Below are positions 32,557 through 42,700 of a stretch of 64,000 nucleotides of DNA, in pieces (positions within the stretch are counted from its first letter, which is position 1; each line of letters starts with the position of its first letter). A model generated the notes under the pieces. That model had not been told where the DNA came from. It did no database searches and was given only the letters and a program-made list of their open reading frames with translations. The stretch lies in NCBI RefSeq assembly GCF_964204645.1, contig NC_134035.1, forward strand, positions 3,906,001 through 3,970,000. The letters are read 5' to 3'. The position numbers and the translations under genes are program-made. Origin of the DNA: Tubulanus polymorphus (taxonomy: Eukaryota; Animalia; Nemertea).

Positions 32557-34505
32557 CAATAGCACCCCTTCAGTTAACGGCGAACACGCATCAGACCTAT
32601 AAAATCTGTTATTATATGGTAACGTTGCCATAGTAATTGGTGTTTTCTCATGATCGGGGCCCGCTAAAGACGTCACCGACCATGATGTATTCGATGTTGA
32701 TTATATGTTTTGTACACACAGTGAAAAAGCTCTAGTCGTGGACCGTGCGTCAGAGAAGCACATATAACGAATCAACCATGCAATGCACTTTCTGTTTTTC
32801 AAAACGACATCTATCATCCGAGGGATTTATTTTTCGAATTTGATCCTGACGAATAAGTTATTTTATTTTGCATTTAGCCGAAGAGGCCATTTTGTACAGG
32901 CAAAACAACGCCGAAGCCCATTTGGGTTATGCAGCCAACCTAACAACTTGGGGTCAGTTGTTTATGATTCTTGACTGCGCAACTTGTGTCATAGAATGAT
33001 ACCCGTCCCGTTTTTGTGCCACCATAGATTTAAGGATTAAGGGTTAGGGGTTAAGCGCAGCAGGCCCATCATGACTCAATGCTTAATCCGTCAATCTGTT
33101 TTGGGTATCAGACATCGAGGGCACCTGATTCTATGACACCGGAACCAGTGTTACGCGCACGAGCTGTACGCCCGCTCCTGGTTCGATCCCCGGAGAGTGC
33201 TCGTTATACTTAATTGCGTCATCCTTATCGTTTCACCAGTATCGTCGATAATTGTTTGGAAATATCCCGCGGTGTTTTGTAATTATTTTAGCTATATGTA
33301 TCACTGTCATTGCGCCGTGCTTTTCGTGTCGGTTGCTGTCAGTGGGGAATGCCTATACAGGATTCAAAACGTTTTTTGCATCAATTTCCTCAGCAATTCG
33401 CTGGTTTTTAAAAACGTGAAATTTCCGTTAAGATATGATAATAACACTTATTCGAAAAAGGTTTTTATTTGTTTATACGTTGCAGTGTATTGCAAATCTT
33501 AAAACAATAGACTCGATGACAAACACTGTGTACTGGCTTATCGTGTAGCCAATTAGACGTTTGGCTTTTGAATCCATACTTCTTTGGGTTCGGACACATA
33601 AAAGGTGTCAGTAATTGGGGAATATCCCTATATTCTGACACTTAGTTAATTACCTTGGCTGTAACACGATTCATTAGGTTTCATTTCCGCGACGTGGATA
33701 GACGAAATCTCTGATTAAAGCAATGCAAATTTTGCCATTTGGACAAAATATCATCATCTCCGGCAAACCGTTTTGCCTTCATAGTAACAAGCCGCCTCTT
33801 TGGTAAACGAGAAAGTGATTAAACACGATTTGATCTGCTTCGGGTAGATTTTCAACCGCCATCAATCACGGGGCCTTTTTTACTGCAGAAACGATACTGC
33901 GTTAAATCTGTAGTGTGTATAAAATAACGATTGTTATTGTAGATTTTGTTCATTCACATTATCGCTTTTTAGCACCAACAACTCAAAAAAATACCGTAAA
34001 CAACACTGAAATTGCAACCGGTAAGAAAGTAAGGTTCCGCCCGTTTGCCATTTATTTACCCAACCACTTCCGCCTGGTCCATTCGAGGAAATTGACGTCT
34101 AGGCGCACACACAGTAGTGTGGAATAGCCGAATAGAGTACGAGGTTAAATTCAGGGTTTATATATGCATAGTGGCAGCGACACTTGAAGAATAGATTAAA
34201 ACCCATTATGTATGCAACAAACGATTAAAAACCAAATACATTTGATCAAAAATCAAAACTCGGAAGACATGACGTTTCTTTTGACTTTCGCACACATGAC
34301 GATGGTCCCTAAAAGGGGGAGAGAGAGAGAGAGTTTAAAACGTCGTGTTTTCTGACTTTAATTTTGCAAGATAAACTTTGATCTTATATATGAATTCAAT
34401 AGAATAGTGATTTTGATAGCCAGCCAGCATTCGACATTATGCTACGTTTTGGTGTATTTAGAAGGCCAATCTGTCTGACAGCCGTTTCTAGTATTTCCTC
34501 GTTCT

Positions 34506-34537
34506 GGGGATTCCCAGTTCTATTCAATTTCCCTTTC
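34506..34537. promoter_or_regulatory. Adjacent NF-kB site (GGGGATTCCC, 34506-34515) and IRF element (TTTCCCTTTC = GAAANNGAAA, 34528-34537)
   Basis: Both match consensus exactly and lie ~420-440 bp upstream of the TPR-TIR start codon. Confidence 0.5.
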
Positions 34538-34949
34538 GATTTGGGTTTCAGGGTACTGTGTGATATAGCTTCGTTATTTTCATTGAAAGTGCAATGCTTT
34601 TGTAAAGCATTTTGCTAAGAAAAATTTTGTAAGAAAACTTCTCGTTTCATTATTTGAAAAGGTCATATTTTGTTCATGTATATTGTATATCCTATCAGGG
34701 ACAGACAGAAAATCAAGACACAAACAACGTTGTCTTTTAAAAAAAATTAAACGTCATGTTATGCAACAGCTGTTGGACTATCGGTATATGTTAGTATATA
34801 CACTCGCTTTCTATGTACGAGCCCGGGTTCGATCCTAGGTGCGCGTATAGGAAATTCGCTTCTTAATATCGTTTAACAGTCGAAACCGATCTACAAAACG
34901 CGAGACGTACGTCGCCTCCTGCTGTATATAGCTACACACATCCGGCAAA

Positions 34950-37513
34950 ATGTTAAGATCAGTAACAGAAGAAAATCTACGGCGCCTTCCGAACCATTTC
35001 CAATACGTGGACAACGAGCGTTCGTGTTTACAATTTCAGCTGATACCAGACACTGATACTGCGCACGGATACCTTGATTACCGGCTCGAAGCGCTACATT
35101 GCGATTCGGACAAAGTCTACGGCGAAAGTGAAACAAATAACAATCTAAATGATTTTTTCGTTCGAGCCGCTGGAACTCTGAGGATATTTGTCGAGTATCA
35201 ACTCAGCTCGTCGAATACAACTACCGACGTGGAAAAAACTCTGCAAGGCTTCCAAAGTCAACGATACAAATCGCTATCCGGTTTGGAAAGTGTTGTGGCA
35301 CTGACAGACTGCGCGTACGTTTGTTTCAGACATAACCGAGTCTCCGAGGCGACAGAGTTTCACGAAAAAGCGAAGCGACTGTACGATGAAAATGCGCTTG
35401 CTAAAATATCAGCGTGGGGTGAGATAGCGTATTCGCATCGACGACTAGGACCCAGGCACATACACAGAGCTAAACTCATGTTTTCGCACGCGCTCGATTA
35501 CATAGATGATCACGTCGATGACCTGACGCCGCGAGATGCGGTGGAACTTCTGAAGGCCATTTTTCAGATGGAGTTCTGTAAGATGATCCACAGGCGCTTG
35601 CACTCGTCGCTGCTGATGGAATGTCCTGAAGAGTTCGACGTTTATTCCGACGTTTGCGACACCAACGTTAAAAAAGCGGCCGCGATGATTCAAAATCTAC
35701 TCGACAGAAATGTCCACCCGATTCTAACCGGTCGTGCTTGGGCGCACATCATTGAAATAACCATTCGTTATAAAGATGCCCAAATCGCTCTGGAACGGTT
35801 GAATCCGACACCGTTTAGATTAGAAGAATTTGAAATATTACCACGAAAATGTCTGACCATTCACGCATCTCGGGAATGGCTCTACAACGAGTATCGTTTG
35901 TCGAAAGACAAGAAAACGTTAACGATTTTGGGTCGTCTGCTAAAATACGATAATCAAATTGATAGGGCAATCGAAATATTTGAACGCGCACTTGAATTTG
36001 GAAGGGAATCGTCGTGTTATCATCATTTGAGCATCATATACAGAAATAGAGCTTTCGACGACTTCGAACTACATTCGCAAACCGATAGATTGGCGCTGTC
36101 TACAGAATGTCCTCCTCCGCTGGAAGTCGACTGTAGCGATCGAATAAAGTATCTGACGGTTCCACCGATAAACGTTAAGGGTAACTTACGAGAAACCAGC
36201 GATAAATATCGACGGATTATTCGTGTACCAGGTTGGTATGTTCATTTGTCTTTAAACGTTTAATACTATCACGGTATATATCTATTTTGTCTTAATTGCT
36301 TTCAGATGATGAAAACATGAAGCGAGCTTTGCATTACATCGAACAAGCTCATGAAATAGACGTCAACGCGGCCACATTTCTGAAAGAAAAAGCACACATT
36401 TTGTCGTGTCTTTCCCAAGATCTTGAAAACGATTTCGACAAAATCTATGATCTTCTGGACAAGGCTCTAAAGGAAAATCGCTTTCGACCTAATTGCGATA
36501 GGGGTCAAGTGTATGAGTTGATGGCTTTGCTTTGTAGAGACACAACAAAACGTCACAATGATTTCCCCACGTTTTATTACAAAGCCGTGAAGAATATGGG
36601 CGAAATAGGCATGCTTCCACCCGTGGCATTTCCAGATCTGAGTGACCTGCTTTACAAGGCGGCAGAGAAGTCAGACAACCCGTCCGAAGCTTTGCGCTTC
36701 TATAAGGAGTTGGTCGATTTGTACGACGCGACTGGTCAGATGCACGAAGCCGTGGCCGGATTCCTGGTTTTAGCCTTAGTACAAACTGCGGTGAAAAGCG
36801 GCGAGGAGAAACTGATTTTGGGACGACTCGTGACGACCTACGTTCAAATGGACGATTTTGAAAGGGCTGGGCACTGTCTGAATCAACTGATCGAAAACTG
36901 CGACGGGTTACGCAATAGCGACATAACCGCCGAGCTTTACTGGAAAGTTCGGAAAAACAACGGGCAGTTTAAGTTGGTTATTGAGGAGGTTTATCCCGAC
37001 GCGGCGGAAACTCCCGTCTTGTTCGTCGTGTCTGCGAAGGACAGCAAACAAGAGATCGCGCAGAATGTCAGTGACTCGATCAAGCAACTCGGCTTCAAAA
37101 ACCTGATGAATCCGCAGATTGACGGGTTACCCGGTCAACCGAATATCGGTCAGTTCGGAGAACTGATTGAACGGTCGAAGGTGATAGTGATTTTGTTCAC
37201 GGAAGAAATGTTCGTAGACAACGAAATAGGTTTAGTCATTCGAGAATGCGCAGCGATGAAAAGACGCAGTCAAGTGATCACTGTTTTCACCCCGGGCATC
37301 CAGGAAAAATCCACCGAACTCGACCACGACGCCGAGGACATTTTCATGATTTGTCGGCATCTTTCCAACGCGCAAGTTCCGCGCGACGCGGAGAAAAACG
37401 ATGAATTCGAGGAAAGATTTGTGGAGGCGATTCTTGAGCGGAATCGGTCGCTGAAGTACGCCATTTCTGAAAACGCGAGCGAAGCCGAGGCGATGCGTGA
37501 GAATACACGCTAA
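34950..37513 (+). CDS. IFIT/TTC22-like tetratricopeptide-repeat protein with C-terminal TIR domain, 829 aa. Exons 34950-36231 and 36306-37513
   Basis: Two long ORFs joined by a 74-nt phase-1 GT-AG intron; in-frame stop upstream of the ATG. LRRLPNHFQY and WGEIAYSHRRLGPRHIHRAKLMFSHAL resemble IFIT/TTC22. TPR helices such as LGRLLKYDNQIDRAIEIFERALE. TIR-like LFVVSA...DGLPGQPNIGQFGELIERSKVIVILFT. Confidence 0.85.
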
Positions 37514-37619
37514 ATCTAGTTCCGATTTTCAAAATAACTAATGAACTAAATCAACAAAGATATCATCCCGCAATACCTCTAGTCCGAAAGGTTTCCTTGG
37601 GCTGGTAGTTTATTCAACG

Positions 37620-37882
37620 CTTTGACTTCATCCTTATAGGAATATGCACTATAGCGTGACAACGCAATATGAGATACACATATCGCGTCATTTAAACTGT
37701 GATTTTAACTTTAAGATAAGAAAGACGAACGAGTCCGAACTGTTATTTTTTAGCTATTAATTTACTCATTTTTCGACTTCATCCTCTGGAATATGTACTA
37801 TACAACGCAATATGAGATATACATATCACGTCATTTAAACTTTGATTTTAACTTTAAGATAAGAAAGATGAACGAGTCCGAA
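37620..37882 (+). repeat. ~115 bp direct duplication in the presumed 3' UTR
   Basis: ACAACGCAATATGAGATA(C/T)ACATATC...AACGAGTCCGAA occurs twice. Confidence 0.85.
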
Positions 37883-39700: not shown

Positions 39701-42700
39701 ATGGCGACAAAAATCAAATGCTTATCGTTAACTCGTATGGTAGTCATAAACGCGATTGTTTTCGGCGTCGAACTTTGCGCCAGTGCCGGATTTACTTATA
39801 TACCGCCGATGCTGCTGAAATCGGGGATTCCGAGTCGATACATGAGCCTGGTGCTCGGTCTAGGACCGTTGATCTGCGTGTTGACAGTGCCCGTTATCGG
39901 GCAGCTCAGCGACAACTGCACGAGCGCGTACGGCCGAAGACGCCCGTTTATTTTCGTACTATCTCTAGTCGTGTTAGCGTCGTTATTTCTAATACCTTTC
40001 GGCGGTGAAATATCGAACTATTTCGGTGGCGGAGCCGCTAATACCGAGGTATCCGTGATTTTGTTGACGGTCAGTGTTGTGCTTTTCGATTTCGGTACCC
40101 AAGCCTGTTTGACGCCTTGCGAGGCGCTTCTCGGAGACATGAGCTCGGCCGATACGCACAGTCGGATATTCGTCGTGTACTCGTTCATGTGCAGCGTCGG
40201 GGGAGTTTTCGGGTATCTGGTCAGCGCCGTCGACTGGAGCCGTTTTTCGATCGGGAATTTCGTCGGCGGTCAGGAGAAATGTACGTTCTTCGTGTTGATA
40301 TTCTGTTTCGTCGCATCGATGGCGGCCACGCTGGTCGGCACGCCCGAACAGCGACACCTTCTGATCAGTAAATCTAAAACAACGAACGGCGCGACGAAAC
40401 GATCGAATCCTTCGTACGTCGAGCGAGAAATCCGACCGAAAAATGAGAATGGCGTAGTTATTTTCGAGGCGAATCCGCCGAATCGTTTAAGCCATATTCG
40501 TTTGCACATAAACGATACAGCGATAACCAGGGCGTCGAAAACGTGTCCCTGTTTGCTGCGCAATTTCTCAAACATCCCGGCAGTTGTGCGGCGCCTTTCG
40601 TTAGCGAATTTCTTCAGTTGGTCGGCCATCTTGTGTTTTACGATATTCTACTCGGACTACGTCGGTCAAGCCATCTACAAAGGGCGCCCGACTGACAACG
40701 TCGTCGACAACGACAGCAGCAGCAGCGGCGGCGGCGGACAGTACGACGAAGGCGTCCGCATCTCGAGTTTGGGATTGTTTTTTCATTCGGTCGTTTCGGC
40801 CGCATTTTCCGCCGTGATCGAATTGTTTTTCCGGCGTTTCGGCGCCAAAGGCACCTATCTGTTCGGGATGTTCAGTTTTACGTTGTCTATGCTAGTCATC
40901 GCCGTTTCGGATGATATAGTCGTTGTGAACATTTTAGCCTCGTTCACCGGTATCGCGTACGCCGTGACGACTACGATACCGTGCACTCTGATCACTCTAT
41001 ACCACGACGATAAAAAGGTAGCTTTATGACCAATGGGATACCGGCAAGCGAGGATTCGGCGATAATCCGCCAGGATCGCTAGTGGCACCGGGTTACCGCG
41101 CTTCCATTTCCTTCTGCCGTTCTAATTAAATTCGAATCTATTTTTCTCACTACTCAATCAATTTTCCATGAAATCCATTCGCTGAATGAGAAAGCGAATC
41201 TTATATCCGTCCGGTAACTTCTAAATTTTCGGATTTGGCGGCTTAGAAATCAAGTTCGGATTTCATCGAAAATGAACCGATTTTCACTACTAATAACGAT
41301 TACGATTATGATTTTATTTACACTCCAACCATTTCCATGGTATATGGAGGAAAACTATTATACATGTATATACAATAACCCAGTTTTTTGTTGCGCCATC
41401 TGGTGAGTGCCGGTATCCCGCTCAAATGACGTTCAAAAGCAATGAGAATACGATGAACATTTTCTTGTCCATTAACAATCATCGTAAAATAACGGACTAA
41501 TTCTATATACAACGGGGCTTTATTACAACGAGTTACTGGGCACCAGAAATTAGTTTTTCGATGTATAAAATCCCACGCTATACTAATGGTAAATTCTGAG
41601 AAGTTTCATCGAGCTAGAACAGAAACATGTTAATTACAGTTGATGAATGAAGTACTGTAGAAACTTCATCCATGTGATATGTATTTCCAAGCGTGTACAT
41701 GCCGCCATTTGGTCGTTTGTCACATGTTGAGATACGTTTCGGCTAATTACTAAATGCGACATCTGCCATGCATGAATATATCGACTGAGATTCCATGTGT
41801 GCTTGCCAGATTGTGCGAAGAAATATTCAAAATCGCGAAAAATTTCATTAGATTAACGAAACGATTTTTGTCAGCTTCACGTGAAAATGATTCTCAGAAT
41901 TACGATACTAATTTGAAGGAAAAACAACTCACGGGCTTCGATGATTTTGTTTGCACGTTGAAACTTGACCGTTTCAAGTGGAGTCTTACTATAATCCCAC
42001 ATGTTGAACTGTGGAGTCTAACTATACTCCCAAAGGGCTTGAGTAGAAATATTTTACGTTCAAAGTACGGGGCCCAGTTTTATATATAGACTGGTTGTAA
42101 TCGAAATTAGAAAAATGGATTTTGGCGGTATAGTTGAGTCGAAAATTATAATCTCAGCAACCGCGGTCCTTTCCAATGTGATAAAGGGTTTACTTTAACC
42201 CGTTGGCTAACTCAATTCATTTTCACTGGTTTAAAAGTTAATACCAGCCTATAAAACCGGATTGGTTCGATTTATTTTGGCTGATTTTATTTCGCAATAG
42301 TAGTCAATTTTCATAATGTAAATGACCTATTAGGTTTTAAATGTAAATTCGGAAATAAATCTAAATGTAACAGCGTAATGATACTCATTTTTGATACTCA
42401 TTTTTAGAGTTTAGATGATGAATTATTCCAATATATGCGACCTTGAATTTCAATACTTCGAGATGAAAAGATTTGATTTTGATTTTGCTCGTGGTAGTTT
42501 ACCGGGTGTAGGGGCCATTTGCACAGTCATTGCGCTTTATACATTACCAGTCTAAGAACGCCTTAGTTCTTCTACTGCCAATCAAACAACTTGAGAGTCT
42601 CAGTATAGGAGATCATTTTTAGGCTTGCCTCGACTATGGAAACGGGCCTAGGGTCCGGTGAAAAAAATCTGCGTTAAGCTTTGACTCAAGAGTTAACTCA

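Follow-up and report, generated by a model that had tools for sequence, protein, structure and literature searches.

Proteins of the IFIT family are textbook interferon effectors, and the locus described here raises the question of whether a module of their kind exists in the nemertean Tubulanus polymorphus, an animal that to our knowledge has no interferon system, and whether such a module can be joined in one chain to a Toll/interleukin-1 receptor (TIR) domain. The window (the whole stretch of DNA that was analysed, 64,000 nucleotides) corresponds to C11:3906001-3970000 in a 268-Mb, 77-contig assembly, and the gene in question occupies positions 34950-37513 of its forward strand. Our preferred explanation, which we regard as moderately probable, is that the gene encodes an expressed, cytosolic protein of 829 amino acids that combines an IFIT/TTC22-type tetratricopeptide repeat (TPR) module, a set of ordinary TPRs, and a diverged TIR domain whose association would be controlled by a ligand.

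Gene structure, splicing, and expression

Two open reading frames (ORFs), 34950-36263 and 36296-37513 on the plus strand, lie in different frames and are far longer than all others in the window. They are joined by a short intron to give the following gene model:

34950-36231, plus strand: coding exon 1, residues 1-427 and the first base of codon 428 (ORF, splice donor, identity with residues 1-427 of P0004)
36232-36305, plus strand: intron of 74 nt, GT..AG, phase 1 (sequence, contigs, RefSeq-derived proteins)
36306-37513, plus strand: coding exon 2, the remaining two bases of codon 428, then residues 429-829 and the stop codon (identity with residues 429-829 of P0004)

The donor reads CCAG|GTTGGT after 36231 and the acceptor TTTCAG|AT before 36306, and the spliced product of 829 amino acids has D428 as its junction codon. 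It is letter for letter the RefSeq protein P0004 ("uncharacterized protein LOC141913073", Tubulanus polymorphus, 829 aa), in which exon 1 begins at residue 1 and exon 2 at residue 429. Because this record contains both exons unchanged, independent annotation agrees with the gene model; P0004 and the paralogous P0001, both RefSeq-derived, read continuously across the intron. The database record P0004 was used for the full-length analyses, and public contigs were compared over 34700-37700. Exon 1 is covered by contigs from four sequencing runs (X1-X4). A 948-nt contig of run X2 omits exactly the 74-nt intron, and therefore the gene is transcribed and spliced in at least one sample; a contig from the DNA-like run X1 retains the intron. 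The exceptional length of the two ORFs and the purifying selection seen against two paralogues (see below) identify this as a real gene rather than a pair of chance reading frames.

The original prediction had called the gene nearly intronless and compared it in this respect to the IFIT genes. The first half stands, since there is only one coding intron, but an IFIT-like gene structure was rejected: the sole coding intron lies at codon 428, in phase 1, and one distant family member has no intron, which differs from the IFIT gene layout (PMC3688568).

The protein is predicted to be soluble and cytosolic. As originally claimed, it has no transmembrane (TM) segment or signal peptide: the maximum Kyte-Doolittle mean over 19 residues is 1.43, and the N-terminus is not hydrophobic. 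Between the assembly and the contigs of runs X2-X4, which stem from another sample, there are 12 differences at coding positions (seven non-synonymous, five synonymous); among them, L714P, T764I, E765D, and E801A lie in the TIR part. They may be allelic, or reads from paralogues may have been mixed into the contigs.

The N-terminal module and the C-terminal domain

The earlier proposal of some 670 residues of helical repeats followed by a further domain agrees with what was found, namely about 655 helical residues (from the secondary structure of the AlphaFold2 (AF2) model and weak or sub-threshold TPR matches in Pfam) and then a β/α domain of about 160 residues. The motifs that it quoted are present as well, with LPNHFQY at residues 13-19, GEIAYSHRRLGPRHIHRAK at about 157-175, and DGLPG at 700-704. 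The chain can be divided into four parts:

34950-36059, plus strand: IFIT/TTC22-like TPR region, residues 1-370 (profile, Atlas features, AF2 model, VIA-align, Foldseek)
36060-36231, plus strand: low-confidence, proline-rich linker, residues ~371-427 (AF2)
36308-36988, plus strand: second helical block, residues 429-655, generic TPR
37007-37483, plus strand: diverged TIR domain, residues 662-820 (Pfam sub-threshold, Atlas model, hhalign)

Residues 1-370 correspond to about residues 4-333 of IFIT5, that is, to subdomains I and II and the pivot. When a profile built from the N-terminal regions of five family members (A7) was searched against 177,635 distinct sequences of the Protein Data Bank (PDB), IFIT5 came first (E 1.4e-8), accompanied by IFIT2 (3.4e-5) and IFIT1 (2.9e-4 and weaker). 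The sole entries ranked among them are designed consensus-TPR proteins; of the other natural TPR proteins, BBS4 follows first, at an E-value of 0.04. The alignments are colinear in each IFIT, pairing query residues 61-183 with 44-169 of IFIT5 and 322-367 with 251-297. Within them, HMMER aligns GEIAYSHRRLGP with (E)GWALLK(F/C)GGK and EIAYSHRRLGP.H.HRAK with EKGWALLKFGGKYYQKAK, just as the original prediction had proposed. Language-model features of the ESM Atlas, computed for residues 1-655, place the protein nearest to TTC22 (0.96, 206 of 256 features shared) and then to clusters of IFIT1, IFIT2, and IFIT5 (0.95).

Structural comparison leads in the same direction. An AF2 model of residues 1-427, calculated from the five-sequence alignment, has a predicted template modelling score (pTM) of 0.68 and a mean predicted local distance difference test score (pLDDT) of 64, with residues 113-370 mostly at 70-90. 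Searched against the PDB with Foldseek, IFIT1 or IFIT5 occupies 10 of the 15 top rows at an E-value of about 1e-3. With VIA-align, the top 12 rows are all IFIT5 or IFIT1 (Z 15.4-12.9, 272-281 residues aligned, root-mean-square deviation 5-6 Å); the best row, at Z 15.4, aligns the model with IFIT5 4-333, and the best unrelated TPR protein reaches Z 10.2. An exhaustive scan of 48,161 PDB representatives that was independent of Foldseek again put an IFIT1 N-terminal fragment first (Z 12.9 against 10.2), and overall the Z-scores of IFIT5 and IFIT1 exceed those of other TPR proteins by about 3-5. The expectation that an AlphaFold-type model would resemble IFIT1 and IFIT5 was thus borne out.

Several observations weigh against this interpretation. 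When both exons were searched as single sequences in Pfam and the PDB, the TPR and TIR matches stayed below threshold; no member alone matched IFIT or TIR significantly, and the family member on contig C7 alone found no IFIT in the PDB. The IFIT match depends on the five-sequence profile, in which the best single-domain i-Evalue is 0.0019. The Foldseek TM-scores to IFITs are low (0.2-0.5), two shape-only Atlas searches returned generic TPR proteins alone (TM ≤0.47), and a Z of 13-15 is modestly above what an arrangement of helical repeats reaches by itself. Moreover, the methods share part of their input, as Foldseek (3Di+AA) and the AF2 model use the same sequences. On balance, the N-terminal 370 or so residues are a remote member or homologue of the IFIT/TTC22 group. 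We place this similarity beyond that of generic TPRs because the profile, the features, Foldseek, and VIA-align all rank IFITs first (with TTC22 nearest in the features), with colinear alignments and a gap in score, and the claim first made from the letters alone is upheld to that extent.

The two parts that follow are less distinctive. The linker is modelled with a pLDDT of 27-47, is missing from the paralogue on contig C4 (a gap in alignment A4), and is probably disordered. A profile of the second helical block (A8) matched only consensus TPR, OGT, kinesin light chain, and HOP in the PDB, with no IFIT signal.

For the C-terminal domain, the Atlas holds an ESMFold model of this exact protein, in which residues 662-820 align only with TIR families (10 clusters, TM 0.65-0.70). 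The nearest feature neighbours of the C-terminus are all TIR domains, mostly bacterial and of the TIR_2 or ThsB-like kind (0.92). An hhalign comparison of the five family C-termini with 11 TIR domains of the same genome gave a score of 30.5 (P 3.6e-4, at a probability of only 37%) over 118 colinear columns from helix A to helix E, whereas reversed and column-shuffled controls scored about 7-15, none above 14.9. In this alignment DGLPG (700-704) falls in the BB loop, and E734 (37223-37225, in FVDNE) is aligned with the glutamate of the Toll-like receptor (TLR) motif WCKYE. E734 is kept in the three close paralogues and in the C7 member (FVKIE), and is ambiguous in the C4 member. The corresponding glutamate (E75) is conserved in more than 70% of TIR domains and is required for NADase activity in those that possess this activity (PMC7075850).

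The divergence of this domain is considerable, and the following results count against its assignment. In Pfam, residues 640-829 reach 19.3 bits for TIR_2 (PF13676) at a cut-off of 28 and 16.9 for TIR (PF01582) at a cut-off of 21.3; P0001 scores 16.4, and no Pfam TIR match was obtained for P0003 or the C7 and C4 members. The TIR-fold evidence rests on the Atlas ESMFold model, whose mean pLDDT over the whole protein is 0.63, as the AF2 model of the domain from five sequences is unusable (pLDDT 36.7), even if its order of strands and helices fits a TIR domain. A PDB search with the C-terminus gave no match even when a profile was used, a search of 1.84 billion representative proteins with an exon-2 profile retrieved no TIR protein, and the window locus is not among the 49 TIR_2 matches of a genome scan. 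Nevertheless, the Atlas and hhalign results argue that the C-terminal 160 or so residues form a genuine but strongly diverged TIR domain, and the TIR fold with a DGLPG BB-loop that had been read from the sequence is retained with that proviso.

The residues that bind RNA in IFIT5 bear on the question of a ligand. Strong effects on the binding of 5'-triphosphate RNA (ppp-RNA) have been reported for the IFIT5 mutations K150M, R186A, Y250F, R253M, Y254F, R260E, and Q288E (PMC9677429, Table 5), of which K150M lowers the affinity about 15-fold (PMC9677429). These positions were compared through the HMMER alignment, in which R186 and Y250 lie outside the aligned stretches:

IFIT5 K150: R165 (35442-35444, plus strand), kept and invariant in five of five members
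IFIT5 R260: K332, kept
IFIT5 H287: H358, kept
IFIT5 Q288: H/Q359, similar
IFIT5 R253: T325, lost
IFIT5 Y254: I326, lost

The residues that are invariant in the family are rich in arginine and aromatic side chains (R165, R215, R262, R329, W264, Y274, Y315, and Y357), and a pocket for an anion or a nucleic acid in the N-terminal module is plausible from the alignment. The loss of two residues that matter for RNA binding, R253 and Y254, and the net acidic charge of the IFIT-like region (-6) speak against such a pocket.

The gene family and its upstream region

Genome-wide counting of paralogues, as had been suggested at the outset, yielded three close copies, two distant members, and scraps of pseudogenes, so that the family has at least five members in this genome. 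Apart from the window gene, the close copies lie on contigs C67 (L002) and C8 (L003), have the same two-exon structure, and are 62-64% identical to the window gene in exon 1 and 76-77% in exon 2. A protein search returned three T. polymorphus database proteins, all named "uncharacterized protein". The two distant members were found by profile search. The one on C4 has about 24% identity and two exons, with a phase-1 intron at the equivalent place, and the one on C7 is a single, intronless ORF of 869 aa. At a distance of 2.3 Mb from the window gene, two further loci, L004 (C11:6229390-6229563) and L005 (C11:6252088-6252261), carry frameshifts and stops and match the final third of the TIR-like domain at 47-59% identity. 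They are the pseudogene remains of additional members of the family.

Pairwise dN/dS (the ratio of non-synonymous to synonymous substitution rates) among the three close copies is 0.28-0.36, and 0.29-0.54 in the TIR part; the three intact paralogues are under purifying selection. Taken together, this is a small, functional birth-and-death family with turnover. In the same three paralogues, a faster patch spans exon-1 codons ~271-330 (window 35760-35940), with a dN/dS of about 0.6-1.0 compared to about 0.3 elsewhere. Of the seven non-synonymous differences in the contigs of the other runs, F289I and A306E lie within this patch, which may be a variable, ligand-facing surface. The synonymous rate dS between the three genes is 0.57-0.71 in exon 1 and 0.36-0.46 in exon 2, a difference that gene conversion, or a more recent common history of the 3' half, would explain.

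Outside T. polymorphus, no homologue was found in an exhaustive HMMER search of the 1.84 billion representative proteins with the exon-2 profile, a result that counts against our preferred explanation. The sole foreign match was a bacterial TPR-CHAT protein, which was weak and confined to the TPR part. Word-index protein searches with the full-length P0001 and with the family alignment likewise gave nothing beyond the three paralogues.

The close copies also share a feature upstream of their coding sequences:

34472-34515, plus strand: conserved upstream module, consisting of an 18-nt block (34472-34489), a TTTCC element, and a κB-type decamer, GGGGATTCCC (34506-34515)

The decamer is perfect in all three close copies, and in the window gene it lies 444 nt before the ATG. 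The same composite is found upstream of all three close paralogues (at -444, -607, and -828) in the same orientation within flanks that are otherwise unalignable, and across the 268 Mb of the genome the composite pattern occurs at those three loci only; GGGGATTCCC alone has 519 sites, compared to 110 for the reversed control. Because the module has been retained through a divergence of dS 0.4-0.7, its conservation suggests a function. It is a candidate promoter or enhancer element responsive to Rel/NF-κB, as judged from general knowledge of such sites, and the κB-type site may be read as a hint of immune regulation. Counts of interferon-stimulated response element (ISRE) and STAT motifs upstream of the gene are unremarkable, apart from one ISRE-like site. 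This ISRE/IRF-like site, GAAAGGGAAA (34529-34538, minus strand), lies 14 nt past the κB-type decamer and is not present in the C67 and C8 paralogues.

The 18-nt motif TGTCTGAYAGYCGTYTYT, one copy of which is the block at 34472-34489, also occurs elsewhere. It has 83 sites in the genome at one mismatch or fewer, compared to about 6 expected by a rough estimate and 36 for the reversed control, the latter mainly on one strand. At C1:12200150-12200186, it again adjoins a GGGGATTCCC site. It could have a regulatory role at scattered sites, or it could belong to a repeat.

As to the surroundings of the family, the TPR-TIR gene is not clustered with its own kind, because its downstream neighbour at a distance of 2.2 kb, a 442-aa ORF (39701-41029, plus strand; MFS_1 match, E 2e-13), is an unrelated transporter of the Major Facilitator Superfamily. 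Just downstream of the C4 member, a reverse-transcriptase-like ORF of 606 aa and an ORF of 188 aa (L010 1254-3678, minus strand; C4:6879253-6881677) are probably a non-LTR retrotransposon. Adjoining the C67 paralogue (L002 505-1095, plus strand), a tandem repeat that translates as TRSILD(L/R)YSI(D/Y) in about 15 copies probably represents a minisatellite rather than a gene.

TIR domains are otherwise common in this genome, with at least 49 matches in the genome-wide TIR_2 scan. TLR genes composed of leucine-rich repeats (LRRs), a TM segment, and a TIR domain, intronless and with open frames of 570-870 aa, form a large set; many are clustered on C10 (1.28-3.45 Mb), and others are found at C3:8.71-8.72 Mb and on C6, C7, and C8 (L017-L026). 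Open frames of about 770 aa with TIR_2 matches were considered as members of the same family and rejected, as 10 of the 10 that were fetched are such intronless TLRs.

Comparison with known systems and rival explanations

The vertebrate IFIT1, IFIT2, IFIT3, and IFIT5 share with the worm protein the arrangement of helices, a colinear profile similarity that begins from the N-terminus, the HF-aromatic motif near residue 15, the basic residue at the position of IFIT5 K150, and a cytosolic chain without TM segments. They differ from it in that identity is only 12-15%, that R253 and Y254 are replaced and the distal TPR block carries no IFIT-specific signal, and that the worm protein has an extra linker of about 55 aa and a C-terminal TIR domain. 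IFITs have been reported to be confined to jawed vertebrates (PMC3688568) and to be absent from lancelet, acorn worm, and sea urchin, where TPR matches were shown to be non-IFIT (PMC3688568). The worm protein should therefore be called IFIT/TTC22-like and TIR-like, and not an IFIT, because it lacks the IFIT gene structure and stays below the Pfam TIR thresholds.

The chordate TTC22 is the nearest cluster in language-model features. The original prediction had in addition placed the LPGHFHL of TTC22 beside the LPNHFQY of the worm protein. In contrast to the latter, the TTC22 clusters listed carry only TPR Pfam families and no TIR domain. The TIR-TPR and ecTIR-DC proteins of invertebrates (oyster, Aplysia, placozoans) resemble the worm protein in uniting TPRs and a TIR domain in one cytosolic chain with a presumed link to Toll signalling, but these classes are defined by domain counts only (PMC4346834, PMC9334734, PMC6321704), and no IFIT/TTC22 relationship has been reported for them. 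Finally, SARM1 (ARM-SAM-TIR), the plant TIR-type nucleotide-binding LRR receptors (TNLs), and the bacterial BcTir/Tpr system also couple a helical-repeat module to a TIR domain with a conserved glutamate. The worm protein differs in having no SAM, NB-ARC, or other oligomerisation module, and NADase activity is only predicted for it; in BcTir/Tpr, the TPR and TIR parts are separate proteins (bioRxiv 10.1101/2023.05.26.542521). We found no report in the literature of an IFIT/TTC22-like module fused to a TIR domain, of an invertebrate IFIT, or of a link between TTC22 and IFIT, and invertebrates are not mentioned in a 2026 review of IFITs.

In the explanation that we prefer, the TPR module would bind a ligand. 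Like the IFITs, it might take up an anionic or nucleic-acid 5' end; like most TPRs, it might instead hold a protein or peptide. Once occupied, it would change how the TIR domains associate with one another, and these would in turn either engage further TIR proteins of the expanded Toll pathway or cleave nicotinamide adenine dinucleotide (NAD+). Transcription may be under Rel/NF-κB control. We take as shown the gene model with its splicing and transcription, the purifying selection on it, a TIR fold at the C-terminus, and at the N-terminus both the fold of the IFIT/TTC22 group and homology with it; it is the ligand, the TIR output, and the immune role that we infer. A more specific version, by analogy with the IFITs, is a one-chain antiviral sensor-effector in which an IFIT-type clamp would read the 5' ends of non-self RNA, with R165 standing in for K150, and would switch on TIR signalling or the loss of NAD+; we consider this rather doubtful. 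We give about the same credence, or slightly more, to the main alternative, in which the protein acts as an adaptor or regulator of the Toll pathway, with the TPRs as a protein-protein scaffold and a TIR domain that docks on the worm's TLRs, without sensing RNA or a small ligand. Such a role would suit the generic character of residues 429-655, the substitution of the two IFIT5 RNA contacts, and the abundance of possible TIR partners, since many of the TIR_2 matches are intronless frames of 600-885 aa and every one fetched has the LRR-TM-TIR composition. TIR-TPR proteins have, moreover, been counted among the candidate adaptors in oyster and Aplysia (PMC4346834, PMC9334734), and ecTIR-DC proteins are proposed adaptors (PMC6321704). 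It sits less well with an N-terminal module that resembles IFIT specifically and not the peptide-binding TPRs, with the basic residue at the K150 position in all five members, and with nearest TIR clusters that are of the bacterial enzyme type (ThsB-like, TIR_2) and not adaptor TIRs.

The two remaining explanations deny either the immune role or the relationship itself. The protein could be a non-immune, TTC22-like housekeeping or scaffold protein whose TIR domain has decayed into a structural appendage without signalling or catalysis. TTC22 is after all its closest neighbour in features, and the divergence of the TIR domain is great enough for it to escape sequence searches of Pfam and the PDB. 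We know of no established immune role for TTC22. We nonetheless judge this improbable, as the TIR part is under purifying selection and has kept the conserved glutamate and a PG-containing BB-loop, while the turnover of paralogues with their pseudogene relics is typical of defence genes and the κB-type site is conserved upstream. The IFIT likeness might also be convergent or an artefact of the TPR solenoid, which would leave an orphan TPR-TIR protein unrelated to IFIT/TTC22. Degenerate TPR repeats have earlier given false invertebrate IFIT "homologues" (PMC3688568), and the low TM-scores, the generic outcome of the shape-only searches, and the incomplete independence of the methods would be in keeping with this. 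It is less probable still, and in our view very unlikely, given that the profile, the language-model features, Foldseek, and the exhaustive VIA-align scan place IFITs first among thousands of TPR chains, in alignments that are colinear, start equally far from the N-terminus, and are separated by a clear gap in score from other TPR families.

If the adaptor explanation applied and the function of the protein were plain scaffolding, the gene would be a lineage-specific curiosity. If the RNA-sensor version held, the RNA-sensing module of the IFITs would predate vertebrates and interferon and would have been hard-wired, once or here, to TIR output, as an animal counterpart of plant TNLs and of bacterial TPR/TIR defence. 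The coupling of TPR or other helical sensors to TIR domains is known mainly from plants, bacteria, and SARM1, and the fusion would offer a simple model of such coupling in animals. The "TIR-TPR" class, which is counted in surveys of invertebrate immune genes but little characterised, would gain substance as well. An IFIT/TTC22-type N-terminal module in a spiralian would, if true, date the origin of the module to before interferon; modules of the IFIT type may thus have existed before it, and a signalling domain can be coupled to them directly.

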